DNA of 64,000 nucleotides from Scyliorhinus canicula (GCF_902713615.1 NC_052151.1:220746863-220810862), one strand, 5' to 3'; numbered from the stretch's first letter, positions 9,570 to 56,790 are shown. The notes: generated by a model from the letters alone, not told the origin. Numbers and translations are program-made.

Positions 9570-9593
9570 GGAGCCACCGACTCGAAACCTGTC

Positions 9594-20445: not shown

Positions 20446-20620
20446 CGACCACCGGCCCACTCGCCCCTCCCCCCCCCCCAACTGCTGTGACCACCACGTG
20501 GCAAAGACAAAGGGACTCTCTCTCCTGGTTGAGTGGGGAAAAAAGAAAAAAGAGACTTGTATTTCTGTTCTTCCCAAAAGAAAACTGGTAAAGAGAAAAG
20601 GGGTAGGGGAAATAAATTTA

Positions 20621-20661
<41 letters not shown>

Positions 20662-20737
20662 TAGATATATAATAATAAATAAAATAAAAATAGGGTGCGG
20701 AAAAGGGGGAAAAAGAAGAACAAGGAGAGAAGAAAAG

Positions 20738-31829: not shown

Positions 31830-32060
31830 CATTTTCTCCTGGTGTCTGCCTGGGTTTCTCCGGGTGCTCCCGTTTCCAGCCACAGTCCAAAGATGTACAA
31901 ATTAGGTGGAATGGCGATGGTAAATTGCCCCTGACAGTGCACCGGTTAGGTGGGGTACGCATTTTTTCAGGACGTGAATCTGGGTAGTGCTCCTTCAAAG
32001 GCTCAGTAAAAACTCGTTCTACCGAATGTCCTCCTTCTGCACTGCAGAGATTCTATGACG
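31830..32060 (+). mobile_element. Degenerate V-SINE copy
   Basis: ctgggtttctccgggtgctcc..cacagtccaaagatgt..aggtgga..cttctgcactg. Confidence 0.65.
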
Positions 32061-34015: not shown

Positions 34016-34715
34016 ACTAGCAAGAGATTTGAAGTAAGGATAACCGTTTTTCTAATAAAGGTGTTGCTGCAGAATGGGGATGAGAAAATTGTCAGCCATG
34101 ATTGAATGGCGGTGCGGACTCGATGGGCCGAGTTGCCTAATTCTGCTCCTACGTCTTTTGGTCTTATGGTCTGAAAACAAGTAGAGGTCAGTGAGCTGAG
34201 GTAATGAGTGGTGAATTTGACTCAATATGAGGTAAGTCATAGATTTTGCTGATGGCGAGTTTATTGAGGGTGGAAAATGGGAGCGCAGACAGAATTCCTT
34301 TGGAATCCTCGTGTTCTGAGAAAACAGTGGAATGGGTGATGGTTTGAAAAGCTGCTAGGCTGACACAGGATGATTATCAGGTGACGTTATGGAGGTGAAT
34401 AAAAGCTGAATGTCCACTTGCCAATAAATCAGCGCTCACCTCGCTTAAAGAAATGGGGCATTGCTCTTCACCTGGTAATCTTGTGAAATCTCCTGACCAC
34501 AGGAAACGGGAAACTTCAACCGCCCTCTTTTCCCCACAATATTCAAGTTCACCATTACTAAATATATAAAATGTATCTATAAATAGATCGATGGACGATC
34601 GCCCTGCCTGTGTTATTGGCTGTTTGAGGTTTTAGAATCCTCCAGCCTCTTTCTGTTCCTTCCTACGGTGGTCCCCTCCTGCTCTATAGATTCGATCATT
34701 GAGCTGCTTTAAATG

Positions 34716-36432
34716 TTATCGTTTATTAATCAAATTAATAATTGATGTAACTGGATATTTCACCGCGCTCTTCAACTGGTCTCTGAATTGGGACTGAGTC
34801 ACCACATAAATAAATGTGTTTGTGCAGCAACTTAAATTCCGCAGCATATTTCCAATTCTTCCAAAGGTATAATAAGAATCACTATCTAACCCATTTGCAA
34901 CACCAAAAAAATATAAAAGGTACACCAACCACAGAAGTATGAAGCTGCCGGATATGCTGAAGAGTAAAACAATAGACTTCCTTCTGCTCTCCATCTCAGG
35001 GTCACTCTGATTCTCTCCCTTGCTCTGGCCCCTCAGTGCCTTACGGACTCGACTGGTCACTAAAATGTGTCTGACTGTCAGAGCGTTAAGCAACAGAATT
35101 AACCCGAATGGTATCAATGGGGTTAAAGCCTTTTCAAACATTCTGAATCCAATCCATATCGGGTCAGTAAAATAGCTTCGTCTATTAGAACAGTACATTG
35201 GTACATTGTCGATGATCTTCCCAGGTTCAAATCGAAAGTACATTGGAATGTTTTTTAAAGAAAGTAAAATCCCGGCTGTTGCTAGAACCACGGCCGCAGT
35301 TTTCTTGGTGCAATATTTATATTTCAGCTTCTGCCAACAAATGGCAACAAATCGATCAAATGTGAAAGCGACGGTGAACCAGACAGAACAGTCCAGGGCT
35401 GCACGATTAAGAACATATTGAACTTCGCACAGAGGGGTGATCCGCAGGAATGTTAACTGGAAATAACTACCGTTGATTCGCCTGGTAATAACCTCAGTAA
35501 TAATGACCAGAAGATCTGCCGCTGACATTGCCACCAGGTATCGAGTGGTGCAGGTGGAGAGACCACAGTTTCCACGGGACAGGATAACGATTGCTATTCC
35601 GTTAACTGAAGGATAAAGAAGGCAAAATGGATGGAAATTACGGAAGTAATCCTCCGTGTCTGAGTATCGGCAGCATGGAATTTAACAGCAGTAAATTTTG
35701 GTTAGGATTGGATAAGATGTTACTCAATCTCAACCATTACCTAAGCTACCCTCCAAAACGTAGATTTCCAGTTACCCCTACCAAGGAGACATCGAGAACC
35801 AAATCATTCTGAGGTACAGCCTTGGGAAACTAGTTTAATCACTACCATAACGTTCTGTCATTAACTCTACTTGGAGTAAGAGTTAGATGTTCCCCCACAC
35901 TGAATATAGTGACAGAATGCCCAGGAAACGCATATATCTGTTGTCCAGTCTTGACTCCAGTTTACAATCCACACTCGGGGCAATTTTAAATTGACAAATA
36001 CCAGTACATGTTAACACATGATCACTGATGTCAGGTCTTCCGCTCCGGTTTAGTCTCACACATTCCACACAGCGTATGTCAATGGATAAACCTGGTAAGG
36101 TCAGGTTTCCTGGTTTGAGGTTTGGTTCAACAGGATACCACGTTGTGCTGAATGCAATAACTTAATCACACAGAGAACCTTCGAGCTAGAAAATGTATGC
36201 AGTATATATTTGCAGAGATTATTCGGGAAAACTAATAAATACACCTTATTGTAACGGCGTATGACAACAATAATTTGATCAAATTGAACTTGATCATTCA
36301 CATGATAATACCACAAAGAAGCTCATGCATAGATTTATTGTGCATTATGGGCTTTATACACTTACCAGGAACAGCAACTATGGCAAGAATCATATAGAAT
36401 ATTTTCATGATCCATTCAATTGTTTGATGCAT
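34716..36432 (-). CDS. GPR139-like orphan class A GPCR, copy 1 (318 aa). Exon 1 36366-36432, exon 2 34716-35605
   Basis: MHQTIEWIMKIFYMILAIVAVP + G|gtaag, ccttcag|TT NGIAIVILSRGNCGLSTCTTRYLVAMSAADLLV; 7TM with FTFDRFVAIC (DRY-like), TPLIPF, SCCTNTFIY (NPxxY-like); 67+890 nt = 957 nt, in frame. Confidence 0.9.
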
Positions 36433-37069
36433 TTTCTGTTTTAAGTGAATCTGTTCCCTGATCCACCATACAATGTCTCTGAAGTAAGATGTGAGGTAAT
36501 ACATTCCCAAAACATTAACTTTATACATTTGAGTATCTCCAAGGAGATAGTGACGTTTCAATATTGTTCAAACTGTTTTTTTCAACCTTAGATCAATTAC
36601 AACATCTGCGTAATTCCCAGCTGTGAATAGGCGAGGCTCTGAGACTTAATTAGAAAACAACATACCTCATAAACTGCTCAAGTATGATTATATTAAATAA
36701 TAAATTATAATTGGAAGCTGTGTTAAACAGCGGTAGAAATGTTCCTTGATCACATATTGTTTCAGAGATGACATTCACTCTGACTGACCATTTAGAAATT
36801 CAATCATTAATGTCAGAGTTTTTCTTCAGATACCCTGTACTCTGGAATTTGGGTGTTCTATTTAGATGGGGCAAGTCGATTCAATGATTAATTGAATGAA
36901 AATATCACAGAATGTTTACAGACCTGCTGTTGGCTATTTGGGGCGTCTGTACAGCAAGATCAGCTCAGCTAATCTCAATTTCCCGTCTCCTCGTCATTGT
37001 GCTGCAAATCGCCTCTCCAGTTGCTTATTCAATTTGCTTCTGATTTCAATCTGTTCTACCAAGTGAATC

Positions 37070-37158
37070 GTTCACCGGAGGAAGGAGCAGTGTTCCGAAA
37101 GCTACTGATTTGAAACAAACCTGTTGGACTTTAACCTGGTGTTATAAGATTTCTTACT
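37070..37158 (+). mobile_element. Penelope-like element terminal fragment with a hammerhead-like motif
   Basis: accggaggaaggagcagtgttccgaaagcta..gaaacaaacctgttggactttaacctggtgtt; second copy inverted at 39068-39147. Confidence 0.5.
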
Positions 37159-37164
37159 GGTGAT

Positions 37165-37508
37165 TTAAAATTAATAACAGTGGTGACTTTAACCTGATGT
37201 GCTTCTGGTACGAGGTGTTTCAAGTCTCATGGATGTTAAAAGGAAAGCTTAAAGGATTCCTTAGTGTTCTATTCTTTGGGGGTTGAATTTGAATTAATGG
37301 TTGCTGAGATGTTTACTGTATGTTTCAAAAAGATTAACTTGAGTTCATAGAATAAACATTGTTTTGCTTTAAAAAATACTTTTCCATTTCTGCTGTACCA
37401 CACCTGTAGAGTGGGCTGTGTGCTCCTCATACTACAATCTATTAAAAGTTGTGGGTCAGGTGAAATCCATGATACACTTTGGGGTCCACTAAACGCTGGT
37501 CCATAACA
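37165..37508 (+). mobile_element. LTR-like fragment
   Basis: Contains aataaa and ends ..ccataaCA; family assignment from recall only. Confidence 0.4.
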
Positions 37509-37894
37509 GTAGCAGTACAATACCCTATCTGAAGATTCAAAAGTTGCAAAAGAATGAGAAAAAGTAAAAGGAGTCTCCTCCCGTTCTGCACATAATTTCC
37601 AATCTGTGGGAAATTCCTGAGTTTCAAACTCACTCTGGCTTTGTCTCACTCCAAATGTGGTCTCCCCCACTGCTCGTGTACAGGAGTTTAACTTTCGACT
37701 CGTTCACCATATTCCAACATATAATTATAGCATGGTTCATCTTGTCGCGGCCTCAACATCACTTTCCTCCCTGCCCCGACATCTGCTGACTCCCATGTAA
37801 ATCAGAAAATGGACTACATTCAGTCACCAAGCCACTGCTCTGTATCCAAGTGAACTCGAAATGCTCAGGAGACGTCAGCAGCAGAGATTAGAAT

Positions 37895-38145
37895 AGAATA
37901 TAGAACAGTACAGCACAGAACAGGCCCTTCGGCCCTCGATGTTGTGCCGAGCAATGATCACCCTACTTAAACCCACGTAACCCGTATACCCGTAACCCAA
38001 CAATCCCCCCATTAACCTTACACTACGGGCAATTTAGCATAGCCAATCCACCTAACCCGCACATTTTTGGACTGTGGGAGGAAACCGGAGCCCCCGGAGG
38101 AAACCCACGCACACACGGGGAGGACGTGCAGACTCCACATCGACA
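37895..38145 (-). mobile_element. HE1/V-SINE copy (5'-truncated, same subfamily as 18330)
   Basis: Reverse complement near-identical to 18400-18665. Confidence 0.85.
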
Positions 38146-38267
38146 GTTACTGAAGGCCTGAATTGATACTGTCACTGAAAGTATCTACCTTCTTAATTTA
38201 AGTGCCCTAAAAGCTACAAAATATTATTTAGTTACTCCATTGCATGAGGCAGGGGCATTGGGGAGGC

Positions 38268-38545
38268 GGTGGCCTCGTGGTAGTGTTACTGGACTAGTAA
38301 ATGAATGCTCTGGGGACGTGGGTTCGAATCCCACCACTGCAGAATCCTGAAATTTGAATTCAATAATAACAGTCTGGAATTAAAAGTCGAATGATGACCA
38401 TGAAACGATTGTCGTAAATACCCACCTGGTTCAGTAAAGGCCTTTAGGGAAGGAAATCTGGCATCCTTACCTTGTGAACCCATAGCAATGCGGTTGAATC
38501 TTAACTGCCCTCATAAGGGCAAGAACAAATGCCCAATAAATGCTG
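38268..38545 (+). mobile_element. LF-SINE-like element
   Basis: tRNA head (ggtggcctcgtggtagtgttactggactagtaa..ggttcgaatcccacc) and core cacctggttca.taa.g.cctttagggaaggaaatct matching the LF-SINE consensus as recalled. Confidence 0.65.
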
Positions 38546-39067
38546 GGCACGCCTGCGACGCCCACGTCACATGAACGAATGAAAACAAAAATCTGTTTTA
38601 ACATAACATTGAATATTAATTGTCTCCACTTCAGTGCACTTCTTTCTTCAAAAGAGTAATTTAAAGATCAACGTTCTCTTCTGGGCCTTAAACACGAGTC
38701 AACGCTACCTTCTCCAAACATCTTGAATTACCAAACAGAGTAGTCACATGGTACCAAGAGTGGTCATCAATGTAGTCCTGTCAGATTTAGAAGGGTCTAA
38801 TCCCGAGGGAAAAAGTCTGGCGAAAGAAAATCGAAGTGGAGTCAATGCCGGGAGGTGGGTGAGTGGTTTAAGTTTTCATGTGTGGGGTGGAAATGTGGGA
38901 GGGTCATTGAGCTACCATTCTCATTCTGACTTATCTTTTTTCCTTTTTTCTGAGAAGTATTTCTCCTCAACATAATGAAGGACTCTTTGTAGGACTAACC
39001 ATACAGGTTCACACATGGATTGAGGAACGACCCATCGAATTAGTCTTGTCTCAAATTGTTTTTTTTC

Positions 39068-39147
39068 AGTAAGAAGTCTTCCAACACCAGGTTAAAGTCC
39101 AACAGGTTTGTTTCAAACACTAGCTTTCAGAGCATTGCTCCCTCCGG
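39068..39147 (-). mobile_element. Penelope-like terminal fragment (inverted copy)
   Basis: Reverse complement ggagcaatgctctgaaagctagtgtttgaaacaaacctgttggactttaacctggtgttggaagacttcttactg. Confidence 0.5.
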
Positions 39148-39559
39148 TTTTTTTTCATTTTGGGAATAAAGAATTGTTAATTGGATTGGGAAATTGTATT
39201 GGATCTGGTCTCTGATCCTAGAAAAATACGTTCTATTGTACCTATCGTGCCTCCGGGCTGACTGGAAACGGGGAGGAGTGTTTCGGTGCACATCCGTACG
39301 TGGCAGCAAAATCCTACCCTCTATTGTGTCTGCTGATTGAGCAATGGCAGAAGCTACATTAGAATTTTGGCTTTGGCTAATTCCTTTATAGGTGGAGACT
39401 TCAATTAACACCATAACCCCGAGATGCACAAAGGTCCAGTAACCAACCCCTCCCCACAACCCAACCCAACAGACAGGGGCGCGAGCTTTGTTAATGAGGA
39501 TGTGGGGTTCTCAGATGTGGAGCACACAACATCCTCAGGACCAAGAATTCACATCTTTT

Positions 39560-40420
39560 CAGCTCCCCATGAATGACATACTACAATTCACTATTTCGTC
39601 ATATCAAGATCAATCAATCCTGTACTCGATGGGCACCTGCTCCATATGCAGAATAGGGATTTTCAATCAAGCTTGTTTTGTCAAGTTTTACTTGAGTTCC
39701 CCCCCCCCCCCCACCACCCCCACCCCACCCCCACCCCCACCCCACACCCTTCCGATCTAGGTTGTGAAGAGTGGGCGGTTCTCTGCTCAGGAACAAATTT
39801 AGTTCCACATATTCTAAGATGAAATTTGACATCTTCTGCTCGGTCAATCTGTCTCTGATGTGAGTCCTTCTATCCTGTGGGAAACTTGTCACGCTTTTGC
39901 TCGGGGGCAAGTCACTTCTAAAACAGCCCCCCCCCCCCCCCCCCAAAGGTGTACAATGCTGGAGCAGCTGTGCCAATTGATAGTAAAATTGGCCGCAGGA
40001 GAGAGGGAGAATGGCAGGTTGCTGTTGAAGGAAATAATCGAGCTGCACTGGACTCCTTGCTGATTCAGCAGGATGTGAGCAGTTTAAAGTTTGCGGAACA
40101 AAAGGTACATGAATTTGAAATCAAACCGAGTAGGTTCCTGGCCTTTTTGAGTTGGAAGAAGTGTCGCTCTAGGGCTATTCCGCATGTGCCGGATCCCAAG
40201 GGGAATAGACTGATCAATACTGAGGATATCAACAACGTTTGTATCCCAGTTTATCTAAATCAGGCCAGTTTGGGAATGCACTGACTCTAATGGAGTCAAG
40301 CTCCTAACGATCTCGGAGAACCAAGAGCTGGTCCTAAATGCCTCTATTTATCAAGGGGAAGGGGCTCTGTCATTGAAGGAGCTTCATCTATGAGGTTGCA
40401 GATTGCGGTTGAATACAATT
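39560..40420 (+). mobile_element. Decayed L1 ORF2 fragment
   Basis: SILWETCHAFARGQVTS and HEFEIKPSRFLAF parallel FWEALKAVLRGEII and YEHGDKASRLLAH in the intact L1. Confidence 0.6.
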
Positions 40421-40956
40421 CCGGTGCTGCTGCTGGCCCTCAACGCTCATGGATGCATTGTGATCACCACCTTACAAAGTTACAACTCCACAAAGAAAAA
40501 CAAATCAGCCCCAGCACCACACAATAGACAAAACATCAAAATTTCAAAAACCCAGCAAATATCTTCTCAAGTTCTTTAAGTATTCCAGCCCAGAAGGGTT
40601 GAGTTTTGACACATGACCACGCACAATGAATTTAGTCACCCTCGACCACCTTGACCTTTTCTCACATCGAGGATGTAGCAGATCAAACCTGTGTCTCTAT
40701 CTTCGTGTGTTATGCAGACCGTGTAATACCTGAAACTTCTAGTCTGTCACATATTGAAATTGTACAAGCATGTTGCGATATAATACCCCAATTCTCCGCA
40801 TCAATTCTGACTGAAAGGTCTTTTTCCAAAGACTGCGGTGCTTCCAATAAGCCCACACAGTACCTAGATCACAGTGTCATAAAATGTACTGAAAGCAGGT
40901 TTTGTTCCCACCAGGAACTTGAAGCGTCAAGATGCATAGTTGTCTTCTGAAGGATA

Positions 40957-43900
40957 TGATGTGTTGGGTACTCTGGATCTGTGGAGACTGTGGTTACCTT
41001 AGCAGTAACATAGACAGGCTACCAACACTTGTCATAATACAACTCTATTTTATTTAACTAAGAGTTGTTAAGCATCTTGCACTGTGGGTCGACCATATGT
41101 GAGATTGACTGAAGACCTATGCCTAACCTGACCAGCCTATACTGCTGGCACATGGTGGATATTTGTGCTACTGACTGCGGGCTCTGTCAGTCTCAGAGGT
41201 TTCATCCCGAATGAGCGATAAAACTAGTGCCCTCTGGCTTTATAGTGACCGTGCTCTAACTGGTGATTGGCTGTTTTGTTGTTGTGTGTTGATTGGTCTT
41301 GCAGTGTGTCAGTCAATGTGTGTCTCTGCACCATCATATACTGATGTGTATATTATGACATCCCCCTTTTTAAAAAACAATGTGTGTTCGTGGAAATAAA
41401 TAACGTAGTGTGTGAATGTTCCTTACTGTGTGTGGCATATGTGAGCATATTTACAGGACGATGTACAGGAACTCTAAGATATTTACATTGGAAGGTGTCC
41501 AGTGCAGATGGACAGTATGTAACACAAAAATATAACTGGAACAACAATATGTACAAACCAGTGAGTTAATGGAACAGGGTAACGAAACAATCAGTTCATG
41601 AGTTCAAAGAGTCCATGAATTTAGGCAGTTCATAAATTTAGTCTCTGAGGTAGGCGAGAATTCTGGTTGACCGCCTCAAGGGTGGGTCAGGGGCCGCCTG
41701 TTGTGGAATGGGCGGGAATGTGTCAGACTCAGAGGGCGGCAGAGCGAAAGGGAGATCAGCAAAGTCCGTAACGGGATCGTCGTGATGGCGAGGCTGGACA
41801 TGATGATCTGGTGGCGGGCGAGGAAGGAGTCGTAGTGCCCGCCTATTTCGGCGAAAAAGAGAGCCGTCTTGTAGACGAACCAAAAAAATTACCTGGGGGC
41901 CACGTATCTGAGTACCACAGCGGTGGCGGACCAACCACTATCGGAAAGTTGGACACGAACCTCCTCATCAGGAGTCAGAGCAGGGAGATCCGTGGCACGG
42001 TCGCCGTATGCCGATTTGTGTTGGGCCCGAGACAGCTGCATTCGGTGAAGGACCGGAAGTTGTCCAAGTCCGGGACACGAATGGCCGGCACCATCATCCG
42101 CAGCGTGCGATTCATCAATAATTGAGCAGGTGACAGGCCGGTGGACAATAGAGCTGATCTGTAAGCAAGCAGAGCGAGGTAAAAATCGGATCCTGCATCA
42201 GCCACCTTGCGCAGGAGTCCTTTGACAATGTGCACACCCTTTTCAACTTTGCCATTGGATTGGGGGTAATGGGGACTGGACGTGACATGTGTAAAGTTGT
42301 ATCATTTGGCAAATTTGGACCACTCCTGACTGGCAAAACACGGGCCATTGACGGACATGACCATGAGCGGGAAGCCATGGCGAGCGAAGGTTCCCTTGCA
42401 CGCACGGTTGACCGCAGTTGAGGTGAGGTCGTGCAGCCTAACTACCTCTGGGTAGTTTGGGAAATAGTTCACTATGAGGACATCGTCCCGGCCAAGTGCA
42501 TGGAATAGGTCGATGCCTACCTTGGTCCAGGGAGACGTGACCAACTCATGAAGTTGCAAGGTTTCCTTTGGTTGAGCAGGCTGGAAACGCTGGCATGTTG
42601 GGCAGTTGAGAATGGCGCTGGCTATGTCCTCGATGATACCAGGCCAGTACACTGCCTCACGGGCCCGTCGGCGGCATTTCTCCGCTCCTGGTGGCCCTCA
42701 TGGAGCTGCTCAAGGGCGAGGTTGGGCATGCTGTGCAGAATGACGATCCTGTCCAACTTAGTAGAATTCCATCTACCACCGCCAGGTCATCTTTAATGTT
42801 ATAGAATTGAGGGCATTGGCCCTTGAGCCACCCGTCTGTCAGGTGGCGCATAACACGTTGGAGCAGGGGATCGTTGGCCATCTCATGACAAATCTGGATG
42901 TCGGTCATCCGTAGCGGGCAGACTGGATGCAGCGAATGCCACCTGAGCAGCAATCTGGCACATGAAGCCCACTGGGTCGCAGGGTGTGGTAACGAATCGG
43001 AAGAGTGCATTGCGATGATGAGCTCCTTACCCGGGGTGTAGACGAGTTTGAAGCCATACCGCCTGAGCTTAAGGAGAATGCACTGCAGGCGCGGTGTCAT
43101 GTCATTAAGGCCTTTTTGAATGATATTGGCCAGTGGCCTGTGTTCTGTCTCGACTGTGAACTTTGGGAGTCCATAGACATAGTCATGGAAGTTGACGACT
43201 CTGGTAAGAAGGCCAAGGCACTATTTTTCAATTTGCAATTAGCGCTGTTCGGTGGGCGTCGTTGCACGTGATGCGTATGCGACAGGACCCCATGAGGAGG
43301 TGTCGTCACGTTCAAGGAGCACCGCTCCAATGTCGGACTGACTGGCATCCGTGGATATCTTTGTTTCTTTGTCCGGATTGAAAAATGCCAACACCGGGGC
43401 CTTGGTCAGCTTCGCCCTGAGTTCCCGCCATTCTTGTTCGTGGGCGGGGAGCCATTGGAACTCTGTCGTCTTCTTGATCAGGTTCCTGAGAGCCGTGGTG
43501 TGGGAGGCGACGTTAGGGATGAATTTCCCCAGGAAATTGACCATGCCCAGGAAGCGGAGGACCACCTTCTTGTCCTCCGGTGTCTTCATGGCCTTAATGG
43601 CAGATACCTTGTTAACATCCGGCTGCACGCCAAACTGTGAAATGTGGTTTCCGAGGAATTTAAGTTTTGTTTGGCCAAAGGAATTTTTTGCGCTGTTGAG
43701 GCGGAGCCATGCTCATGGATTCGTCGCAAGATGCGTTGGAGGCAATCACAGTGCTCCTGCGAGGTGGAAGACCAGACGATGATGTCGTCCACATATATGT
43801 GAACCGCTTCGTTACCTTCCATTATCTGCTCCATTATTCGGTGGAACACTTCCGATGCAGAGATGATGCCAATCGGCATCCTATTGTAACAATACCGGCC

Positions 43901-46454
43901 AAAAGGTGCAGAGCTTCCGACTGGATGCTTCAAGTTGGATATGCCAGAGCCCCTTGGATACATCTAGCTTAGTGACAAATGTGGCGCGAACCATCTTGTT
44001 GGTGAGTTCTTCGCGCTTTGGAATGGGACAATGTTCTCTCATAATATTGCGGTTTAGGTCCTTGGGATCAATATATATACGTAATTTGCCGGATGGCTTT
44101 TTTCACGTACACCATCGAGCTGACCCAGTCAGTTGGTTCTGTAACTTTCGAAATTACGCCCTGGACCTGGACTTCCTGCAGCTGCTGCTTGAGGCGGTCC
44201 TTGAGGGGTGCTGGTACCCTGCGAGGCGCGTACACCACAGGCGTGGCATTTGGTTTTAACAAGATTTTATAAGTGTACGGGTGTCTATCCATGCCCTCGA
44301 ATAGACCATGGTGTCCAGCTGTGACCGAAAGACAGCGTCCTGAGTTGCAGAAGAGTCAGCGGAAAACAGGGAGTGAACCCTTTGGACAAGGTTTAGGAGT
44401 TTGCACGCCTGAGCAACAAGCAGGGAGGTGTTAGTTGATCCCACTATTTCCAATGGCAGGTTAGTCTTTAATTTTTAAAAAAATTTAGAGTACCCCATTA
44501 TTTTTTTCCAATTAAGGGGCAATATAGCGTGGCCAATCCACCTACGCTGCACATATTTGGGTTGTGGGGGCGAAATCCACACAGACACGGGGAGAATGTG
44601 CAAATTCCACACGGACAGTGACCGAGAGCCGGAATTCGAAACCGGGTCCTCAGCACCGTAGGCAACAATGCTAACCACTGTGCCACCGTGCTACCCTAGG
44701 TTAGCCTTTAATAAATGGTGCGACACTTCAAGCTGGCAAGAGCAACTGGCAGCAATGGCATTACCCTTATAGTCCAGAAATTGGCAGGCGGAGGGCATGA
44801 TGGTAGGCTTGACATGGAGGCTTTCGAGGTCAGATCGCACAATGAGGTTATCTGAAGAACCGGTGTTCAGGCGGAATCGCATGCGGGATCGGATGACCGT
44901 GAGAGTGGCACACCAGTCGTCGTCCGGATAAATGGTGAATTTTGGGAGAGACTTGGCTTTTGTCTTCGGGAGCATCTTGTGTTTGGTGATGATGCCCACC
45001 CGAAATGGTGCTTTAGGGTCCTCGGTGTCAAGGTCCGGAATCAAGTTAGTCAGAATCGGTGACCGGTGGCTGGATGGAGCGACGAGAGGTGGTAGGTTGA
45101 GCAGACCTGCATCAGGCTGTTTCGTGGCCAAGCTTGCCACATTGGAGACAGTGTCGAGATTTTGTCGGACATTGCCGCTTTAAGTGGGTGGAGCCACAGT
45201 TGCCGCACGTCGTGATGTCAGAACGTTCGGTGCGCCACCGCGCATGCGCGGTGCAGTCGTACGTGGTGCGCAACTGCGGAGTGTGGTCTTCGGACTCGCC
45301 GTATCCTCGGTTAGTGCGCGGGAGTCCGCAAAAAGTGCACACATTGGCCGCCATCATCCAGGCTTATGCCCTGGAGTTGTTTAACGGCTTCCACCCGCTC
45401 TGCCTCGTGGGGACTTTGTCGCACCGTTTCAGCCGCTTGAATGTGCGAGTGTCGATTAGTGTTGTGTTCATGCAGAACGCAGGTCTCGATGGCAATCGCA
45501 AGGGTGAGCTGTTTAACCTTGAGGAGCTGCTGGCGTAGAGGGTCCAATTGCACACCGAAAATGATCTGGTCATGTATCATCTAATCGGCGGTGGAGCCAT
45601 AATTGCAGGACTGCGTGAGGATGCGAAGGTTGGTGAGAAATGATTAAAAAGTTCATCCATATCCTACAGACGCTGTTGAAAGACATAGTGCTCAAATCTT
45701 TAATTTAACTCGATATCACAGTGACTGTCGAATTTGAGCAGGACTGTCTTGAACTTGGACTTGTCTTCGCGTTCAGCGAAAGTGAGAGTTGAAGATGTGG
45801 ATGTCGTGGTCCCCGGCCGTGGAAAGGAAGCGATCAATTTTCCTTGCATCTGAAACAGCTTCCAGGTCTGTAGCTTCGAGGTCTGGCTGAAATCGTTCCT
45901 TAAAGATTTTCTAGTTCGCACCGAGGTTGTTGGTGATGCAGAGCGGCGTTGGAGGGCGGAGGCCTTCTATACTACTGGATGGCTGATTGCTGATCGAAGG
46001 CAGATCACTTGAAGTTAGGTCTATTATAGTCTAACATCACGTACTGGTACCATGATGTGTTGGGTACTCTGGATCTGTGGAGTCTGCGTTTACCTCAGCA
46101 GCAACATAGACAGGCTACCAACACTTGTAATAGTACAACTCTATTTTATTTAACTAAGAGCTGATGAACATACTTGCACTGTGGGTCGACACTATGTTAG
46201 ATTGACTGAAGACCTATGCCTAATCTGACCAGCCTATACTGCTAGCACATGGTGGATATTTGTGCTACTGACTGCGGGCTCTGATTGTCTCAGGCTGCAT
46301 CCCGAATGAGCGGGAAAACTAGTGCCGTCTGGATTTATAGTGACCGTGCCCTAACTGGTGATTGGCTGCTGTGTTTTGTGTGTTGATTGGTCTTGCAGTG
46401 TGTCAGTCAGTGTGTGTCTCTGCACCATCATATACTGATGTGTATATTATGACA
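40957..46454 (-). mobile_element. Full-span but defective Gypsy (Ty3) LTR retrotransposon: 3'LTR 40957-41360, 5'LTR 46053-46454, TSD GGATA
   Basis: LTRs TG..CA; PPT (aaaaaaggggga) at 41361-41372; PBS TGGTACCAG next to the 5'LTR; gag CCHC knuckles CGNCGSTHLKRQC / CLQCGKLGH; protease LNTGS (DTG mutated); RT YVDDII; RH TDASQ; IN PWTKVGIDLF; many stops and frameshifts. Confidence 0.92.
44472..44697 (-). mobile_element. V-SINE inserted into the Gypsy pol
   Basis: Flanked by aggttagtctttaa (44458-44471) and aggttagcctttaa (44698-44711), a 14-bp TSD with one mismatch. Confidence 0.85.
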
Positions 46455-49400
46455 GGATAAAGTCTCTAAATTGGAGATATTTAAACAATTAGTATCGCTG
46501 AATATCAAATTATTGCCATGGCATAAATGACGAGGAAGCGCCGCGGAACATATCTCCCAGGTCACAAATACCTCTATCTCTCTTGATATTGATTCCATTG
46601 TCCAGCAAGCTGGTTGGAAACCTGCGTTGTCCTAAATAGGAGAGAGAGTACACGTTAATTTTGACTTCCCTTCCAGGTGACGGACTATCTTCCTCGTTCT
46701 AAGTGTTGATGATGATAGGATTCTCACACAGACCAATACTTGAAATCCGTGTAACACAACGGGGCCTGTGAGGAGTACACAGATTGGCCTGATTCAATGT
46801 CGAGCCAAATGGAGGAGGGGACCCTTCTGTCCCAATCTCTCAGAAACCTCAGCAGTGCAACAAATTGATACATGTTAATATCCGACGCCCTCTCTGGAAA
46901 TGGGCAGCAGCCTTTTGGCTAGTTTGAAAGGAGGATGTTTGTTGTTCCATATAAAGGATCTAAGGATCCCGTACAATTCCTTTAGGACCTAAGCAGAAAG
47001 CAAGATTGGCAGCGTCTGTGAGGGATACAGTAACAGGGCAGCACATCCCCCTTAACCAACGTTATTTTGCCCAACCACTAAATCGGCAAGAATGACCAAC
47101 GTAGAGGTACAACCTAGATCCAATTAACGTGTGTGGGGGGGGGGGGGGGTGGATTTCCCCTTTTAAATGTTTAAAGGGGGTAACCATTATACTAAGAGAG
47201 GTGAACCCCGAAAGGGACAACTTAATAATAATAATGTTCATTGTAACATGTAGGCCTACATTAACACTGCAATGAAGTCACTGTGAAAAGGCCCTAGTCA
47301 CCATACTCCGGCGCCTGTTCAGGTACACAGAGGGAGAATTCCGAATGTCCAATTCACCTAACACACGTTTTGTGTACTTGTTTGACGCACGCGGGAATCT
47401 AACCTTGGAGCCTGAGGCTGTGAAGCAATAGAGCTAACCACTGTGCTACCGTGCTGCACTTGAATGAGCATTAGGAAAGGAGAGAGGTCGCTCTCTGAGT
47501 CTATCCAATGTTGTAGTTTCAAACTTTGTTGAATTAATTCTGTTGCCAGAAAAAGGCTAAATCTATCCATCACTTAGTAGCAGGATCAGAAACGTCCGTC
47601 TTAGACACAAAGAGCAACACGTTGTCTGCGTAGAGCGCGGTCTTCTTCCGCTTCCCTTCATTATGTAGCCCAGAAACCAAAGGGTCCTGTCTTATTGTGT
47701 CTGCCAGAGGTTCTATGATTATTGCAGACAATAACGGAGAAAATCAGCCCCCCTGTCCAGTCCCTCGTTGGAGACACAAATTGTCTGACCCATAACCATC
47801 GTAAGCACAGCCGCTCGAGGGGTTTTGTAAAGTCCCCCTGTCCACTTGACATACTGCCCTTTAGAAGTCAGGTATTTCTAATAAACCTAATATAGGCAAA
47901 AGAAAGCTGTTGAAGCGTAAATATTAAGCCCCAGTTTTAAATTAAGGATTAAAAACACATATTCTGCAAATTAATTTAATCATTTTCCCCAACAGAACTT
48001 TTAGGTACATAGTTTTAAAGTAACACGGAAGTCTGATAAGACAAACACTTTTCACTACATTTCCCCAAGGACAAGGGCTGAATCCATGGCAACGAGCTGA
48101 CAAGAGCACAGTAACTTAAAAGCTCTATTGTTCTCATTTCGGGCCATTAGTGATTACAGCCTGAATCACATTCTATAACTTATACATGTTGAAACATTCT
48201 ATACTATGCTGGCTTGTTTTTAATAAATGTACAGTTAGAACATTGAATCAAATATATTTGATTCCGACATTCTCATAACATAACAATTTCATAGAAGCAG
48301 CATAATTCACTTTACTAGATTAAAACAGACAGTTTGATTTACATTTTTCAAGTCATTGCCCAGAATTACATGACAAGATAACATGAAGTCTCCATTGTTA
48401 CAATAGCCAAGTCATCAGAAAACCAGTTTCTACTAGCTTTGATAAAGCACAATATCGCATTCTGTAACACATACAAGTATGTAGAGACGCAACAATTAGA
48501 AGTAATGTTACATATTAAAGATGGACAGCTTGCCGCCAAATCAGATGTATTTGAGTCTAACGCAAACCAATTAGGATTATATTGGGGTGTGATCCGATGG
48601 CTTAAGACAGATATGAAGCAGTATAACTGAAGAGTTTCGTTCCGCCATTTTTTGGGTAGGTCGATAGGTTAGTTTTGGGTAGGTGGGTTGGTTAGTTGGT
48701 TAGTGGTGTTAGTTTGAAGCTGAGGATTAGCTGGATTTCTCTCTCACTTTTTCTTGAATCATCTATACTTTGATCTGAACTATTCACTGTCTCCCTGTAT
48801 TCATATTTCATTTTCAGACTTCAATTTTAAAGTTACTGTCGAGCTGCTTGCCGAAGCAAGAAGATAATTTCTGTGATTCTCTGAAAGTTTTAAATTGTCT
48901 ACTAATTGGCTTTAAAATCACTTTCAAATTGTAATCAATAGAAGACAAATAATACAATTCTTTTCTGCACCTGAGAAGTTTTAACTTACATTTCTACTGA
49001 GTTCCAGTAATCGCAAAGTGCTGCTGGTAACCGAATTGTTTAAATCAATCAACCGTAAGCACAGCCGATCGAGGGGTCTCATAAAGTCCTCCTGTCCACT
49101 TCACATACTTCCCTCCCAACACAAACTTTTACAGAGTACAGAATGAATGCTTCCACTCTCCCTGGTCTAAAGCTTTCTCTGTATCTCAGGAGATCATTAA
49201 CCCTTTCAACACCCTTCTATAAAAGACCTGAATAACATTCATTACTCTCTCAATACTGTTACACAAATTGTTACACCCTTTATGAACCCAGTCTGATCGA
49301 ACGTGATGGTCAGCGGGAGAACGCCTTCCAGGCTCCACGTTAATCCTTTCGAAAACATCTTCATATCTACATTCAGGAGTGAATTGGCCGACAGGAGTCG

Positions 49401-50984
49401 AACTATTCAGGATTATTCCAGCCTTCAGGAATAAGGGAATATTCGCTTCCCGGAGCGACTACGGCAGCAGACCTGCTTCAAATGAGTGACGAAACACGAC
49501 AATCAGTGGATCCATTAGCAAGTCATTAAATTCCTGTAAAACTCACAGCCAAAAGCAGCAAGTTGGGGCCTGAACAGATTGAAGCTCCTTCAATGACAGC
49601 CACTTCCCCTTTAGAAATAGCAGGATTTAGGTTCAGCCTTTGGTCCTCGGAGATCTCTGGGAGCTTGAGAGACGAGAATAAGCTTTCACTCAGTGTCAGT
49701 GCATCCCCAGACTGGTCTGGTTTAGATAAACTGGGAAAAAACGATGTTGATATCCTCAGTGTTGATCAGTCTATTCCCGTTGGAATCTATAACGGGGGAA
49801 TAGCCCGAAAGTCCATCTTCTTCAAAGTCAAAAAGGGCAGGAACCGACATGGTTTGATTGCAAATTCAGATAATTTCTGATTGGCAAACTTTAATCTGCT
49901 CACATCCAGCTTAGTCAGCAAGGGCTCCAGTGCAGCTCCAGTTATTTCCATCAACAACACGCGGTTGGGCCTCCTGCCATTCTCCCTGTCTGCTGAAGCT
50001 CATTTCACTATCAGCTGGCAAAGCTGCTCCGGCACACAACACCTTTTGTTGGCCGTGTTTGAAGTGACTCACGCCCAGCATAAACCTTGCCAGTTACCCC
50101 CAGGATCGAAAGGCAAACATCAGAGATAGAATTGACTTGGAAAAAGCGGCCAAATTATATCTTAAAATATAATGTGAAACAATTATGTCTGAGCAGAGAG
50201 TGCTGAATCTTCACGACCCTGATCGGGATGGATGGAGGCCCTCACGTAAAAGCTGTATAAAAACAGGTGCATGATCGGAAACCTCTATCCAGTCTATGGA
50301 GCAGGACTGCAGGATTGATCTGGACATGAAGAAATAGTCAGTTGTAGTATGACATTGAATGGGAGCAGAAAAAAATGTGACTTCTTTATCCTAAGGATGT
50401 TGTGTTGTCCACACCTCTGAGTGCCTCACATCCTCACAATCAACGCTCCCACCCCTGACTGTCGGATGGTGGAGAGGCTGTGTGGGGAAGGGGTTTGGTT
50501 ACTGGAAGTTTGTGCTTCAATGGGTTAACGTGACAATTGAAGTGTCCACCTATCAAGGAATTAGCCGAGGCCAGGCCAGCAAAGTGCATGAAGACTGAGT
50601 AACACAATCAGGGGCATTGTTAAGACGGCCATATACATTCATTATTGACCCAACCTCCCCTATTGAAAAGCGCTTGACAATCACATACCAAACACGCCTT
50701 CTCGTTCACAACTTCTCTATTTTGAAAGGCTCATTTGTGATGACTGATTCCCAATACTGGTCGGGAAAGAAGCAAAGTAAAACCTGCCCCGTGCAGTCAC
50801 ACCTGAACGATAAGTCTTTCTTGTTACCCAAATGAGTTTCCTGAAACACAACTTTGTCAAATTGCTCTTGTATGAAGAAATGACAAAACCTAATTCCTCT
50901 GAACAGGACGATGTAGTCCCCATACATTCCAGGAGCATATTTGTAATGTTGCTATTGTCATTTTTGAATCAGCAGAGAGAATAC

Positions 50985-51330
50985 ATAGAATTTACAATGC
51001 AGAAGGAGGCCATTCGGCCCATCGAGTCAGCATTGGCTCTTGGAAAGAGCACCCCACCTCCAAGGTCAACACCTCCACCCCATCCCCATAACCCAGTAAT
51101 CCCACCTAACACAAAGCACAATTTTGGACACGAATGGCAATTTATCATGGACAATGCACCTAACCTGCACATCTTTGGACTGTGGGAGGAAACCGGAGCA
51201 TCCGGAGGAAACCCAGGCACACACGGGGAGGATGTGCAGACTCCGCACAGGCAGTGACCCAAGCCGGAATCGAACCTGGGACACTAGAGCTGTGAAGCAA
51301 TTATGCTATCCACAATGCTAACGTGCTGCC
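50985..51330 (-). mobile_element. HE1/V-SINE copy
   Basis: Near-identical to 11017-11355. Confidence 0.85.
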
Positions 51331-51789
51331 CACAAATAGAAGGAAGGAAATAGAATTGAAGGAAGGATTTGGTGCCACGTTCTAGTGTGCACCGAAACAC
51401 TCCTCCCCTTTTCCAGTCAAATCAGAGGCACCATAGATACAATATAACCTATTTGTACAGAATGAGACACCTGGCCTATAGCTCTTGGGGCTAAAGGAAT
51501 CTAGGGGCAAGGGAAAGGCTGGATCAGGGTTTGGAACTGATGATCAGCTGTGACCACAAGGAATGACAGAACAAGCTCAAAGGGCCGAATGACCTCCTCC
51601 TGTTTCTATTTCCTATGCATGTTTCTATGTATAAAGAGGTGGAATCTGGACCCTATGTTGCTCTGAGCCGAGGAGAGATTGAGGCAGATTGAAAATTCTG
51701 TCTCATTCTGGACACGACATTGAGAAACAATGCGAGGGTTTTAGAAACAGTGTCGAAATTGATGCAGATAAATGTCCTTTGCCAGATGA

Positions 51790-52150
51790 CCTTCTGTTAC
51801 GTGGAGGGATAAGATAAGGTGGGATTGTTATCCTTGGAGAAGGGAAAGTTGTGGGAAAATTTGACAGAGGTTTTCAGAATAGAGACGGGTGTTAACGGGA
51901 TAAAGAGATATTCACCAAGGCAGACATGTCGAGAACCAAAGGACATAGGTTTGATGTGACTGGAGATAGAATCAGCGGCTGAATGAGAAAACACAGTTTA
52001 ACAGGGCACTTTGTTAGGATCTGAAATGTGCAGTCGTAGAGTGTGGCGAAGCCAGATTCAAATCAGAAGCAAATTGAATAAGTAACTGGAGAGGCGATTC
52101 GCAGTACAATGACGAGGCGACGGGGAATTGAGATTAGCTGAGCTGATCTT
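51790..52150 (+). mobile_element. CR1-type LINE 3' fragment, decayed
   Basis: gggattgttatccttggagaaggga..gaggttttcagaat..gtcgagaaccaaaggacatagg. Confidence 0.55.
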
Positions 52151-52671
52151 GCAGGGAGCCGCCGCTGTACAGAAACCCCAAATGTTCAACTGCAGATTTA
52201 TAAACATTCTGTGATATTTTCATTCAATTAATTATTAAATCGAATTGCCCCAGCGACATAGAACAGTCACATTCCAGAGTACAGAAGGAACATTTAATTT
52301 CTGAATGGTCAGTCAGAGTGAATGTCATCTCTGAAACGATATGAGACCACGGGACATTTCTACCGCTGTTTAACACAGCTTCCAATTATAATTTATGATT
52401 TAATGTAATCATACTTGAGCAGTTTATGAGGTAGGTTGTTGTTTAATTAAGTCTCAGAGCCTCGCCCATTCACAGCTGGGAATTAACGCAGGTATCGTAT
52501 TTGTTTGAATCAAGTTTTTTAAAAGCAACAATTTGAACAATATTGCAACGTCACTATCTCCTTGGAGAATCTCGAATGTATAAAATTAGTGCTGAGGGAA
52601 TGTATCACCTTACATCTTACTTCAGAGACATTGTCTGCTGGGTCAAGGAACAGATTCACTTCACACAGAAA

Positions 52672-54385
52672 ATGCATCAACCCATTCAATGGGTCAGGAA
52701 AATATTCTATATGAGTCTTGCCATAGTTGGTGTTCCTGGTAAGTGTCTAAAGTCCATTATCCTGAGTAAATTGGTGCGTAAGATTGTTTGTGGTATTATT
52801 CTGCGAATGACATGCTAAATTTGATCAAATTATTATTTTATACATTCGCCCCTACAGTAAACTGCATTTATGATATTTCCTGAATGATCTCTGCAAATAT
52901 ATACTGCATGCATTTACCACCACAATGGCTCTCTGTGAGAAAGTTGTTGCATTCAGCACAATGTGATATCCTGTTGAATCATACCTCAAACCAGGAAACT
53001 TGGCGTTTTCAAGTTTTTCTCTTAACCTAATGTATACAGAATGAGTGTGATTAACTGGAGCAGACTACCTGAGCCCAGTGACCATGTGTTAGTATTTCTG
53101 ATTCTAAAGGTGCACTCAGTGTGGGTTATTAACTGGAGTCAAGACCCGGCTGCAGTGACATGCATTTCCTGGACGTTCTGGCATTGTACAACTGTATTCA
53201 GTGTGGTGAATCTTCTCACTCTTATTCCAAGTAGAGATAATGACAGAACTTTATGGTACTGATTAATCGCCTTCTCCAAGGATAGTCCTGATAATGGTTT
53301 GGTTACGAATGTTTGGTTGCGGGGGAAATTGGAAATTGTGTTTTGGATGGTAGCTGAGGTAATGGTTGAGATTGATTAACCTCTGAGCCAACCCTAACCC
53401 ACAATTTATTGATGTTAAATTCAATGCAGCCTATGCTCACAAATGGAGAATTACTGTCAGTAATTTCCAACTATTTTTCCTTCTTCGTCGTTCAGTTAAC
53501 GGAGTGGCAATCGTGACCCTGTCCCTTGGAAACTGCGGCCTCTCCACATGCACCACTCGATACCTGGTGGTAATGTCAACGGCGGATCTACTGGTCATTA
53601 TTACTGACGTTATTACCAGTCGAATCAATGATTATTATTTCCAGCTAACTTTCGTGCAGATGACACCTGTGTGCAGTGTTCAATATGTTCTTATCCGTGC
53701 AGCCCTAGATTGTTCTGTTTGGTTCACCATCGCTTTCACTTTTGATCGATTTGTTGCCATTTGTTGGCAGAAACTGAAATATAAATATTGCACCAAGAAA
53801 ACTGCGGCCGTGGTTCTCGCAACAGCCGGGATTTTGCTCTGTTTAAAGAACATTCCCATGTATTTTAGATTTGAACCTGGGAATATCATCGACAATGTAC
53901 CAATGTACTGTTCTAATAAGCAAAGTTATTTTACTGACCCGAGATGGATTGGATTTAGAATGTTTGAAAAGGCTTTAACCCCATTGATACCATTCGGGTT
54001 AATTCTGTTGCTTAACGCTCTGACAGTCAGACACATTTTAGTGACCAGTCGAGTCCGTAAGGAACTGAGGGGCAAGAGCAAGGGAGATAATCAGAGTGAC
54101 CCAGAGATGGAGAGCAGAAGGAAGTCTATTGTCTTACTCTTCAGCATATCCGGCAGCTTCATACTCCTGTGGTTGGTGTACCTTTTGTATTTCTTTGGTG
54201 CTGCAGATGGATTAGATGATGATTCTTTTTTTATCTTTGAAAAAATTGCATATATGCTGCGGGATTTAAGTTGCTGCACAAACACATTTATTTATGTGGT
54301 GACTCAGTCCCAATTCAGAGACCAGTTAAAGAGCGCGGTGAATTATCCAGTTACATTAATTATTAATTTGATTAATAAACGATAA
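52672..54385 (+). CDS. GPR139-like orphan class A GPCR, copy 2 (318 aa). Exon 1 52672-52738, exon 2 53496-54385
   Basis: MHQPIQWVRKIFYMSLAIVGVP + G|gtaag, ttcag|TT NGVAIVTLSLGNCGLSTCTTRYLVVMSTADLLV; DRF and NTFIY motifs; exon sizes identical to copy 1 (67+890 nt). Confidence 0.9.
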
Positions 54386-54559
54386 CATTGAAAGCAGTTC
54401 AATGATCCAATCTACAGAGCAGGAGGGGACCGCTGCAGGAACGAAAATAGGGCCAGGAGGATTCTGAAACCTCAAAGAACCATTAACACAGATACGTCGT
54501 CCATCCCTGCATCCAACTATTTTCCGGAATATTTTCCGAATTTACTGACACTGAACTTG

Positions 54560-55680
54560 AATATTGCTGAAAATAGAGAAATGTCGAGGTTTCCCGTCTT
54601 ACTGTCGTCAGGATAGTTCAATAGATTACCAAATGATGAGGAAAGCCACTCCACATTTGTGGAAAAATAAGGCTCAGGCATTCGCAATAATCTTCAGCCG
54701 GAAGTGCCGAGTGGATGATCCATCTAGGTCACCTCCAGAGGTCCCCAGCATCACGATGTCGGTCTTCAGCCATTACGATTCACTCCACGTGATATCAAGA
54801 AACGGCCAAAGGAACTGGATACTGGAAAGGCTGTGGACACTCACAATATTCCGACAATAGTACTGAAGTCTTGTGCTCCAGAATTTGCTTCACCCCTTGC
54901 CAAGCTGTTGCAGTACAGCTACAACACTGGCATCTAACCAGAAATATAGTACCTAGCCCAGGTGTGTCCTGTACACATGAAGCAGGAAAAATCCAACCCA
55001 GCCAATTACCGTCCTATCAGTATACTCTCCACCATCAGAAAAGAAGTTGAAGACGTTATTAACCGTGTTATCACGCAGCACTTAAGTGGCAATAACCTTC
55101 TCACCGACTCTCAGTTTTGGTTCCGCCAAGGTCACTTAGCTCCTGACGTCATTACAGCCTTGGGTCAAACATGGACAAAGGAATTGACCGCCAGAGGTGA
55201 GCTGGGTGTCTGCCTTTGACATTATCGCAGTGTTTGTTCGAGAAGAGCACAAAGGAGGCCTAGCAAAACTGGAGTCAATGAGAATCGGAGGGAAACCTCT
55301 CGACTGGTAGGAGTCATCTGTAATATAAAGGAAAATGGTTCTTGTTGTTGAGGGTCAATCATCCCAGCTCCGGGACTTCACTGCAGGAGTTCCTCAGGGT
55401 CGTATCCTCTGCCCAACCATCTTCAGCTGCTTCATCCATGACCTACCTTCCATAATAAGGTCTGAAGTGCGATGTTTTCTGATGACTGCAGTGTTCAGCA
55501 TCATTCGTTGCTCCTCAGACACTGAAGAAGTCCACGTGCAAACCGAGAGAATATCCAGATTTGGGCTGACAAGTGGTAAATAATATTCGTCCCACAGAGA
55601 TGCCAGGCAATGAGCACCTTCAATAAGAGAGAAGCAAACCATCGCCTTTAGCATACAATGGCAACAAGCCGAGATATCCT
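54560..55680 (+). mobile_element. CR1/L2-group LINE RT fragment, decayed
   Basis: KSNPANYRPISILS, NNLLTDSQFWFR, AGVPQG.ILCPTIFSCFIHDL motifs. Confidence 0.75.
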
Positions 55681-56442: not shown

Positions 56443-56790
56443 TGGGCAGCACGGTGCCATTGTGACTAGCACAATCGCTTCACAGCTCCAGGATCCCAGG
56501 TTCGATGCTGGCTTGGATCACTGTCTGTGCGAAGTCTGCACATCCTCCCCGTGTGTGCGTGGGTTTCCTCCGGGTGCTCCGGTTTCCTCCCACATTCAAA
56601 AGGTGTGCAAGTTAGGTGGATTGGACATGATAAATTGCCCTTAGTGTCCAAAATTGCCCTTAGTGTTGGGTGGGGTTACTGGGTTGTGGGGATAGGGTGG
56701 AGGTGTTAACCTTGGGTATGGTGCTCTTTCCAGGAGTCGGTGCAGACTCGATGGGCCGAATGGCCTCCTTCTGCACTGTAAATTCTATGA
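56443..56790 (+). mobile_element. HE1/V-SINE copy
   Basis: Full head, V-domain and tail; near-identical to 2947-3300. Confidence 0.85.

Follow-up and report, generated by a model that had tools for sequence, protein, structure and literature searches.

A head-to-head pair of class A receptor genes from an elasmobranch-only family in Scyliorhinus canicula, differing mainly in the extracellular half

Two divergent receptor genes

The window analysed here is a stretch of 64,000 nucleotides from the catshark Scyliorhinus canicula (GCF_902713615.1, NC_052151.1:220746863-220810862), and all positions are counted from its first letter. It carries two genes, A and B, which code for G protein–coupled receptors (GPCRs) of class A and lie head-to-head with their start codons 16,240 bp apart. 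An original prediction made from the DNA had described two divergent genes of 318 amino acids at a distance of about 16 kb; both open reading frames (ORFs) indeed are intact, and all strings quoted in that prediction are found in the sequence. We consider it probable that both genes are functional, as paralogues within a large elasmobranch-restricted class A family—most likely with different ligands and one shared output. The parts of the two genes are the following.

36433-37053, minus strand: upstream conserved region of gene A, putative promoter/5′ untranslated region (UTR) and possible 24-codon N-terminal extension; 87.6% identity to gene B
36432-36366, minus strand: gene A coding exon 1, 22 codons and 1 nt, starting at the usual family start MH.PI
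35606-36365, minus strand: gene A intron, GT...AG, phase 1, 760 nt; 77.8% identity to the gene B intron
35605-34716, minus strand: gene A exon 2, codons 23-318 and stop, from the end of transmembrane helix 1 (TM1) to helix 8; Pfam 7tm_1
34457-34715, minus strand: gene A 3′ flank, the outer edge of the duplication (blastn block), homologous to the gene B 3′ flank 54386-54647
52053-52671, plus strand: upstream conserved region of gene B, putative promoter/5′UTR and possible N-terminal extension starting with the ATG at 52600
52672-52738, plus strand: gene B coding exon 1, as read from the sequence
52739-53495, plus strand: gene B intron, 757 nt, phase 1, GT...AG
53496-54385, plus strand: gene B exon 2, codons 23-318 and stop; Pfam 7tm_1
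53606-53695, plus strand: gene B codons 60-89 (TM2 top, extracellular loop 1 (ECL1) and TM3 top), a variable block; gene A equivalent 35406-35495, minus strand
54200-54265, plus strand: ECL3 and TM7 top of gene B (codons 258-279), more divergent than any other block; gene A equivalent 34836-34901, minus strand

After splicing, ORF listing and translation give 318 residues and zero stops for each gene, and both proteins match Pfam 7tm_1 (PF00001)—gene B with E=1.4e-19 and gene A with E=6.7e-18. The single phase-1 intron interrupts TM1 directly before N1.50; in both genes, exon 1 ends in CCTG with GTAAGT following across the border, and exon 2 is preceded by a pyrimidine tract and CAG. The two coding sequences share 91.4% of their nucleotides (82 of 957 differ) without any indel, and the proteins, with 43 of 318 residues differing, are 86% identical; a tblastn comparison of gene A exon 2 with gene B gives 87.5%. 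No further copy or fragment of the receptor family was found by tblastn elsewhere in the 64-kb window.

A further ATG in the same frame lies upstream of both starts by 24 codons (at 52600 in gene B and at 36504 in gene A) and would lengthen the protein to 342 amino acids. Over this stretch, A and B differ at 8 nt and, by a reading by eye, at 6 of 24 residues. A similar N-terminal extension is found in the annotated relatives P0010 and P0065, and most family models start at the methionine of MH.PI. The 318-residue model is the better guess, and the start codon is not settled.

At the other end, a canonical AATAAA lies within the last codons (I-N-K-R-stop) of both genes (54374-54385 and 34716-34727). 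The A/B homology decays within ~60-250 bp past the stop codon, and the 3′UTR may be very short; in that case, the family's conserved LINK motif at the C-terminus would also serve as the polyadenylation signal.

An elasmobranch family under a misleading name

A protein search returned 2093 matches. Every one of the best 120 comes from a shark or, in part, from a ray—67 from Heterodontus francisci and 4 from S. canicula—and most of these 120 are named "probable G-protein coupled receptor 139." The closest are two catshark paralogues, P0001 (88%) and P0002 (84%), both distinct from genes A and B. Scored against 1.84 billion representatives, 110 clusters (50% identity) are reached at E<=1e-30, and 30 of 30 sampled representatives at an identity of at least 38% are sharks or batoids (Mobula, Narcine, Rhinoraja, Leucoraja, and Hypanus). 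Two conserved orthogroups come next, at ~30% identity to the elasmobranch family.

In a maximum-likelihood tree, which was built without bona fide GPR139 and GPR142 sequences, the elasmobranch family is monophyletic (98/92) and sister to an amphibian/sturgeon group (100/100). An orthogroup spanning coelacanth, sharks, ray-finned fishes, amphibians, and reptiles—with the catshark orthologue P0275—branches outside the family and its sister. A catshark-only clade (100/99) unites A and B with P0001 and P0002, and within it A groups with P0002 (100/96); hence, A and B are not each other's closest relatives, and their separation is not the most recent duplication. Several deep subfamilies mix sharks and rays, so that the expansion began before the shark/ray split. 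For P0002 (S. canicula GCA_902713615.2), an identical protein is encoded at two places on one 226-Mb chromosome, and the subclade thus appears to be still duplicating. To judge from these searches and the tree, A and B belong to an elasmobranch-only expansion, which is a lineage separate from GPR139 despite its public name. The original prediction had proposed a ligand-diversifying receptor family; count and tree agree with this idea, as they describe a large family rather than a small one orthologous to GPR139.

No description of this elasmobranch family was found in the searchable literature, which included two catshark olfaction/sensory papers. Nevertheless, its members already stand in public gene lists under a misleading name, and the present pair on its own adds just two to them. 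What this locus contributes anew is the inverted arrangement, the mosaic divergence, and the ECL3/TM7 block, and also that both genes appear to be missing from the protein collection searched. The automatic names are inconsistent even within this one monophyletic family and include, besides GPR139, neuropeptides capa receptor-like, vasopressin V2 receptor-like, CCR3-like, FMRFamide receptor-like, and uncharacterized; several public models also carry long, probably spurious N-terminal extensions or fusions.

Receptor architecture and the GPR139 site

An AlphaFold model of the relative P0005 (74% identical and co-linear; predicted local distance difference test score 80, predicted template modeling score 0.77) has seven helices and helix 8, and the helix limits for A and B are taken from it. 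Foldseek searches of AlphaFold/Swiss-Prot and PDB give TM scores of 0.7-0.76 to many class A receptors—these being generic peptide-receptor matches—and do not single out GPR139, which takes ranks 20-42. The class A micro-switches N1.50, D2.50, R3.50 (in a DRF motif), W6.48, N7.49, and Y7.53 as well as both cysteines are kept and family-invariant (C82, C161, W248, R107, and N285 among them). Two class A motifs are varied in A and B: P6.50 is replaced by V and P7.50 by T, the latter giving NTFIY. These departures seem plausible for a class A receptor.

Human GPR139 (PDB 7VUG/9M42) is a Gq/Gi-coupled brain receptor that is activated by L-Trp and L-Phe. Compared as a single sequence, the catshark receptor reaches 29.5 bits with solved GPR139—on a par with GPR21, GPR15, and GPR52—while a profile of the whole family ranks GPR139 first among solved structures (E=2e-14, with the next at 1.6e-9). 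The aromatic amino-acid site of GPR139 is formed by F109 (3x33), H187 (5x43), W241 (6x48), R244 (6x51), and N271 (7x38) (PMC5430874). Binding-site residues from that study and from PMC12775434 were mapped onto A and B by profile alignment.

F109 (3x33): Arg in A and B
H187 (5x43): Glu in A and B
W241 (6x48): Trp, kept in A and B
R244 (6x51): Tyr in A and B
N271 (7x38): kept as Asn in A, replaced by Tyr in B
E108 (3x32): replaced by Asn in A and by Ile in B
D84 (2x61): replaced by Arg in A and by Ser in B

Hereby, one to two of the five ligand determinants are retained, and W6.48 is the sole one common to both genes. A GPR139-type aromatic amino-acid site is hence not expected in A and B by this alignment. 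The "GPR139-like" label of the original prediction shrinks to a distant clan relation, with 21% identity in structural alignment, and its analogy to aromatic amino-acid ligands fails at a pocket that is not conserved.

Where the two receptors differ

The differences between A and B are clustered: 30 of the 145 residues in the extracellular half differ, compared with 13 of 173 in the intracellular half (2.8-fold enrichment, Fisher p=8e-4). By segment, they amount to 9/31 in TM1, 6/31 in TM2, 3/8 in ECL1, 2/8 in ECL3, and 9/28 in TM7, whereas TM6 (0/31), intracellular loop 1 (ICL1; 0/6), and ICL2 (0/10) are free of them. Within codons 60-89, 13 of 30 residues differ, at 0.21 nonsynonymous (dN) and 0.31 synonymous (dS) substitutions per site. 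Seventeen of the 43 differences change charge—12 of these in the extracellular half—and the differing sites carry a net charge of +3 in A and −1 in B. The claimed clustering in ECL1/TM3 and ECL3/TM7, often with a change of charge, is thereby borne out. The near identity of the intracellular parts, which had been claimed as well, stands for ICL1, ICL2, and TM6, but partly reflects the nucleotide level, as dS drops 3-fold over the 3′ 45% of the coding sequence.

The same contrast runs through the family. Among 85 members, the most variable alignment columns are the N-terminus/TM1 top, 2.61-2.65, ECL1, 3.28-3.36, ECL2, 5.40, 6.54, ECL3, and 7.28-7.42, while ICL1, ICL2, TM6, and the ICL3 motif SDPEMESRRKS are nearly invariant. 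Expressed as entropy, ECL3 reaches 2.46 and the N-terminus/TM1 1.48, compared with 0.33 for ICL1, 0.45 for ICL2, and 0.64 for TM6. Of the A/B differences, 17 of 43 fall into the 45 most variable family columns (odds ratio 5.8, p=5.6e-6). The 20 mappable positions homologous to the GPR139 binding site also are more variable across the family than the remainder (1.72 vs 0.93 bits, p=8.5e-5); six of these 20 differ between the two genes (p=0.038). A separate observation concerns ICL3, which usually is the least conserved loop of GPCRs: at family alignment positions 224-233, its nearly invariant motif bears an RRxS kinase-type site family-wide.

The inverted duplication and its spacer

The homology of the pair extends through the intron ends and upstream, as had been claimed: blastn aligns a main inverted block, 34457-37053 against 54647-52053, with 82.8% identity over 2636 columns. 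Weaker homology lies beyond this block, so that the arms were originally at least 6 kb long. On the outer side, the identity of the A/B 3′ flanks falls from 93% down to 55% within ~250 bp. Between the arms, two further features are found.

39207-40386, no strand assigned: degraded inner left arm, with inverted homology to 49580-51471 (blastn, 70-80% identity)
40956-46454, minus strand: degenerate Ty3/gypsy-type long terminal repeat (LTR) retrotransposon, LTRs 40956-41360 and 46052-46454, 91.9% identical

The arms have diverged very unevenly. The divergence (K) is 0.263 in the intron, with 9 indel events in 773 columns, and 0.303 in the 3′ flank; it is 0.089 in exon 2 and 0.135 in the 547 bp upstream—roughly half the intron value. 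In the 957 nt of coding sequence, no indel is present, whereas ~11 would be expected at the intron rate (P of none = 1.4e-5). An intron with nine indels, a coding sequence without any, and a conserved upstream region mean that both reading frames and the upstream region have been kept under constraint; judged by divergence, the duplication is old, at ~3x that of the LTRs. The LTR retrotransposon entered the spacer after the inverted duplication, and its gag zinc knuckle, reverse transcriptase, RNase H, and integrase remain in fragments on the minus strand.

The conserved ~550 bp upstream are a candidate shared promoter. Within them (52053-52599 and 36505-37053), two stretches show 93-94% identity, and TAAT-type cores occur in one of them, which is AT-rich. 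That the pair is an assembly artefact or a haplotig is ruled out, as the copies are inverted and 8-25% diverged, and an origin by retroposition is ruled out by the retained intron. Besides, a short repeat of ~130-150 bp occurs in both orientations at 78-88% identity (38020-38166, 51128-51273, 56520-56647, and 31791-31930), and an RVT_1 fragment (E=7e-6) lies at 54962-55219, just downstream of gene B and outside the duplicated block.

Possible selection and gene conversion

The codon-level analysis covers the A/B pair. Over the whole gene, dN/dS is 0.37-0.5. It is 0.37 in the extracellular and 0.30 in the intracellular half; the extracellular value is not markedly higher because dS also is higher there (0.28 vs 0.12). 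Outside three variable blocks, dN/dS is 0.13. Of the two patterns that the original prediction had set against its own idea—randomly placed substitutions or uniform dN/dS—the first is not found; as to the second, the two halves are similar in dN/dS.

Synonymous divergence breaks after codon 176, with dS 0.238 before and 0.075 after (permutation p=0.028); when a synonymous-poor tract is sought with a fixed window of 77 codons, no significance is reached. This drop suggests that the 3′ 45% of the coding sequence was homogenised by gene conversion. Inside this part, codons 258-279 stand out with 12 nonsynonymous and 1 synonymous changes (dN/dS 3.7), heterogeneous with respect to the rest of the gene (p=0.0055). 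The excess is pronounced against the local synonymous rate (P=8e-4) and is neutral against the 5′ synonymous rate (P=0.58), which would apply if the block escaped homogenisation. The TM7-top variants are shared with other paralogues—those of A with P0002, those of B with P0001—and hence predate the youngest duplications. By these codon comparisons, constraint is strongly uneven and lifted at the presumed ligand entrance; positive selection on the pair is plausible and not demonstrated.

Genomic neighbors and expression

A T cell receptor (TCR) locus had been claimed nearby, and V-type segments indeed are found at 3.6-16.7 kb, 17-31 kb from gene A.

3597-3986, minus strand: V-type exon
9193-9822, minus strand: V-type exon
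16335-16682, minus strand: V-type exon
19500-26400, plus strand: L1-type long interspersed element, with a 771-residue ORF (endonuclease, reverse transcriptase) followed by 530 amino acids with a zf-RVT match

The three exons bear WYRQ...YFCA motifs, with one weak Pfam V-set match among them; two end in C-A-C-S and one in C-A-A-S. The L1 element and ~8 kb of other DNA separate this cluster from gene A. These TCR V neighbors are real but uninformative on the function of the receptors.

Neither gene A nor gene B is found in any RNA run of the index. Four raw RNA runs of unspecified tissue, compared with 52000-54700, yielded no read on gene B and a single partial one, which falls in the 3′ flank; this does not constitute a valid negative. 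In a catshark sensory-organ study, no GPCR is among the top olfactory-specific genes, and this family is unmentioned (PMC11979771).

Two paralogues with a probable common output

These data can be joined into one scenario. The pair arose when a segment with arms measuring at least 6 kb was duplicated in inverted orientation long ago; the LTR retrotransposon settled in the spacer later, and both copies have kept their ORFs, splice sites, and conserved upstream region. Each gene would encode a seven-helix receptor with a TM3-ECL2 disulphide, the W6.48 switch, and the DRF and NTFIY motifs. Its ligand would sit in the transmembrane pocket and in an extracellular vestibule lined by the hypervariable positions of the family—2.61, 2.64-2.65, 3.28-3.32, 3.36, ECL2, 5.40, 6.54, ECL3, and 7.28-7.42 being the proposed lining. 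The near-invariant ICL1, ICL2, inner end of TM6, SDPEMESRRKS motif, and helix 8 probably serve one common transducer for all paralogues. As A and B differ at 2.61 (R/S), 3.32 (N/I), 7.35-7.42, and in the charge of the vestibule (+3 vs −1), different ligands are most likely. Gene conversion, or a later homogenisation of the coding sequence in its 3′ half, would account for part of how sharply variable and identical regions are set apart. The ligand-diversifying family with a shared signalling interface, as originally predicted, would thus persist in its large size, its variation at extracellular and pocket sites, and its nearly invariant intracellular surfaces, though without the GPR139 ligand analogy.

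Several observations weigh against two functional paralogues with different ligands. The extracellular face changes faster in GPCR paralogues generally, and the pattern alone is no proof of adaptive diversification. The whole-gene dN/dS is below 1, the two halves hardly differ in it, the synonymous divergence is mosaic, and the ECL3/TM7 block turns neutral once the 5′ synonymous rate is applied. The pocket assignment is based on an alignment to GPR139 at 21-25% identity and on generic numbering rather than on coordinates. In addition, the exact A and B proteins are absent from the public protein collection searched, and the RNA runs described above yielded neither gene.

Much of this would fit a nonadaptive history, in which A and B are redundant and relaxed constraint on loops and helix tops, together with patchy gene conversion, produced the pattern while ligand specificity did not diverge—a minority possibility, yet one to be taken seriously. 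The uneven dS, a whole-gene dN/dS below 1 with similar values in both halves, and the neutrality of the ECL3/TM7 block against the older synonymous rate all suit it, and the TM7-top variants common to P0002 and P0001 were not invented after this duplication. However, the differing sites match the hypervariable and GPR139-site-homologous positions beyond what the extracellular half in general would give, and the 5′ part still shows very few intracellular replacements at a neutral dS, so that constraint at the protein level is uneven. The charge changes, with 12 of 17 extracellular and a net shift of 4 units, also argue against mere relaxation. It is improbable that one or both genes are silent relics heading to pseudogenes and kept intact-looking by conversion from active paralogues. 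Their absence from the RNA runs, the missing exact proteins—while P0001 and P0002 are annotated—and the signs of homogenisation in the 3′ half point in that direction; against it stand reading frames free of stops and frameshifts next to nine intron indel events, splice sites and start codons intact in both copies, an upstream region conserved at twice the neutral level, and purifying selection that can be seen in the 5′ part, whose synonymous divergence is neutral.

Two readings tie function to a known system. That A and B are immune-sensing receptors functionally linked to the adjacent TCR V cluster is suggested by the distance of 17-31 kb, but the family copies are so many and so dispersed that adjacency by chance is expected, the L1 element and ~8 kb of other DNA lie in between, and no shared regulatory feature was found; we regard such a link as very unlikely. 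Hardly credible, and the least probable of all, is that the genes are true GPR139/GPR142-type aromatic amino-acid sensors which were merely duplicated. GPR139 is the best solved match of the family profile, the TM7 motif is proline-free in both, the TM1-TM3 motifs are similar, and the public name says the same. Opposed to this are the low single-sequence score and fold-alignment identity, two conserved vertebrate orthogroups that stand between the family and GPR139, the replacement of F109, H187, and R244 by R, E, and Y—with N271 kept in A alone—and the C3.25-ECL2 cysteine pair of the family, where GPR139 has D at 3.25.

What the pair might mean

If two functional paralogues of a ligand-diversified family are the right description, a further step suggests itself, which we put forward as speculation and hold to be rather unlikely: the shark and ray genes misnamed "probable GPR139" might be an unrecognised chemosensory repertoire, derived from a single ancestral jawed-vertebrate gene, tuned in the pocket and coupled to one transducer. 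The family does display a large lineage-specific expansion with birth-and-death and species-specific clades, and a hypervariable pocket next to a conserved signalling face. The canonical chemoreceptors of the catshark comprise 2 odorant receptor (OR), 3 ORA, 3 trace amine–associated receptor (TAAR), and 2 TARL genes (PMC11979771). Such a repertoire could make up for how very few OR, TAAR, and V1R genes elasmobranchs possess; despite its few odorant receptors, the catshark has a large class A family whose evolution bears the signature of a sensor array diversified for ligands. If expressed in sensory or barrier tissues, the family would be a new branch of vertebrate chemoreception and would also illustrate the evolutionary potential of a lost relative of GPR139, a drug target. 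The pair itself is a natural experiment—86% identical, with most differences in two short blocks at the presumed ligand entrance—and would suit de-orphanisation by chimeras.

Comparison with known systems

GPR139 and the shark receptors have in common the class A architecture, the kept W6.48, a TM7 motif without proline (NTFIY in A and B, NFFLY in GPR139), and similar motifs in TM1 (GxPxN), TM2 (AxADxLV), and TM3 (xDRxxAxC). GPR139, however, is a single, highly conserved gene (PMC12208981), whereas the sharks have an expansion of hundreds. It bears Asp at the aligned position 3.25, where the shark family has its TM3-ECL2 cysteine pair; P6.50 is V in the shark family, the shark N- and C-termini are very short, and the identity amounts to ~21-25%.

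Closer relatives are found among genes of the same automatic name. The amphibian/sturgeon "probable GPR139" proteins (P0244, P0413-P0431, and P0432) are the sister group and the reciprocal next-best match at 30-33% identity. They are likewise ~340 amino acids long, but remain unexpanded with one copy per genome and are 66-74% conserved across amphibians. The conserved "probable GPR139/GPR142" orthogroup (P0249, P0275, and relatives) is of the same clan at ~30% identity to B (91 bits), spans coelacanth, sharks, ray-finned fishes, amphibians, and reptiles, and has GPR139 as its best solved match (70 bits); some of its models are fused to TMEM183A. It differs in forming a separate clade with P0275 as single catshark orthologue and in retaining R6.51.

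With regard to evolutionary mode, the sensory class A expansions—odorant receptors, TAARs, MRGPRs, and nematode Srw-type receptors—offer a parallel. As a lead only, the nearest neighbors of the shark receptors in feature space include rotifer, echinoderm, and nematode Srw-type expansions. By sequence, the shark family is a member of none of these sensory expansions, and its coding region is split by the TM1 intron; nevertheless, it shares with them many paralogues in species-specific clades, compact genes with short termini, and hypervariable pocket positions set against invariant intracellular faces.

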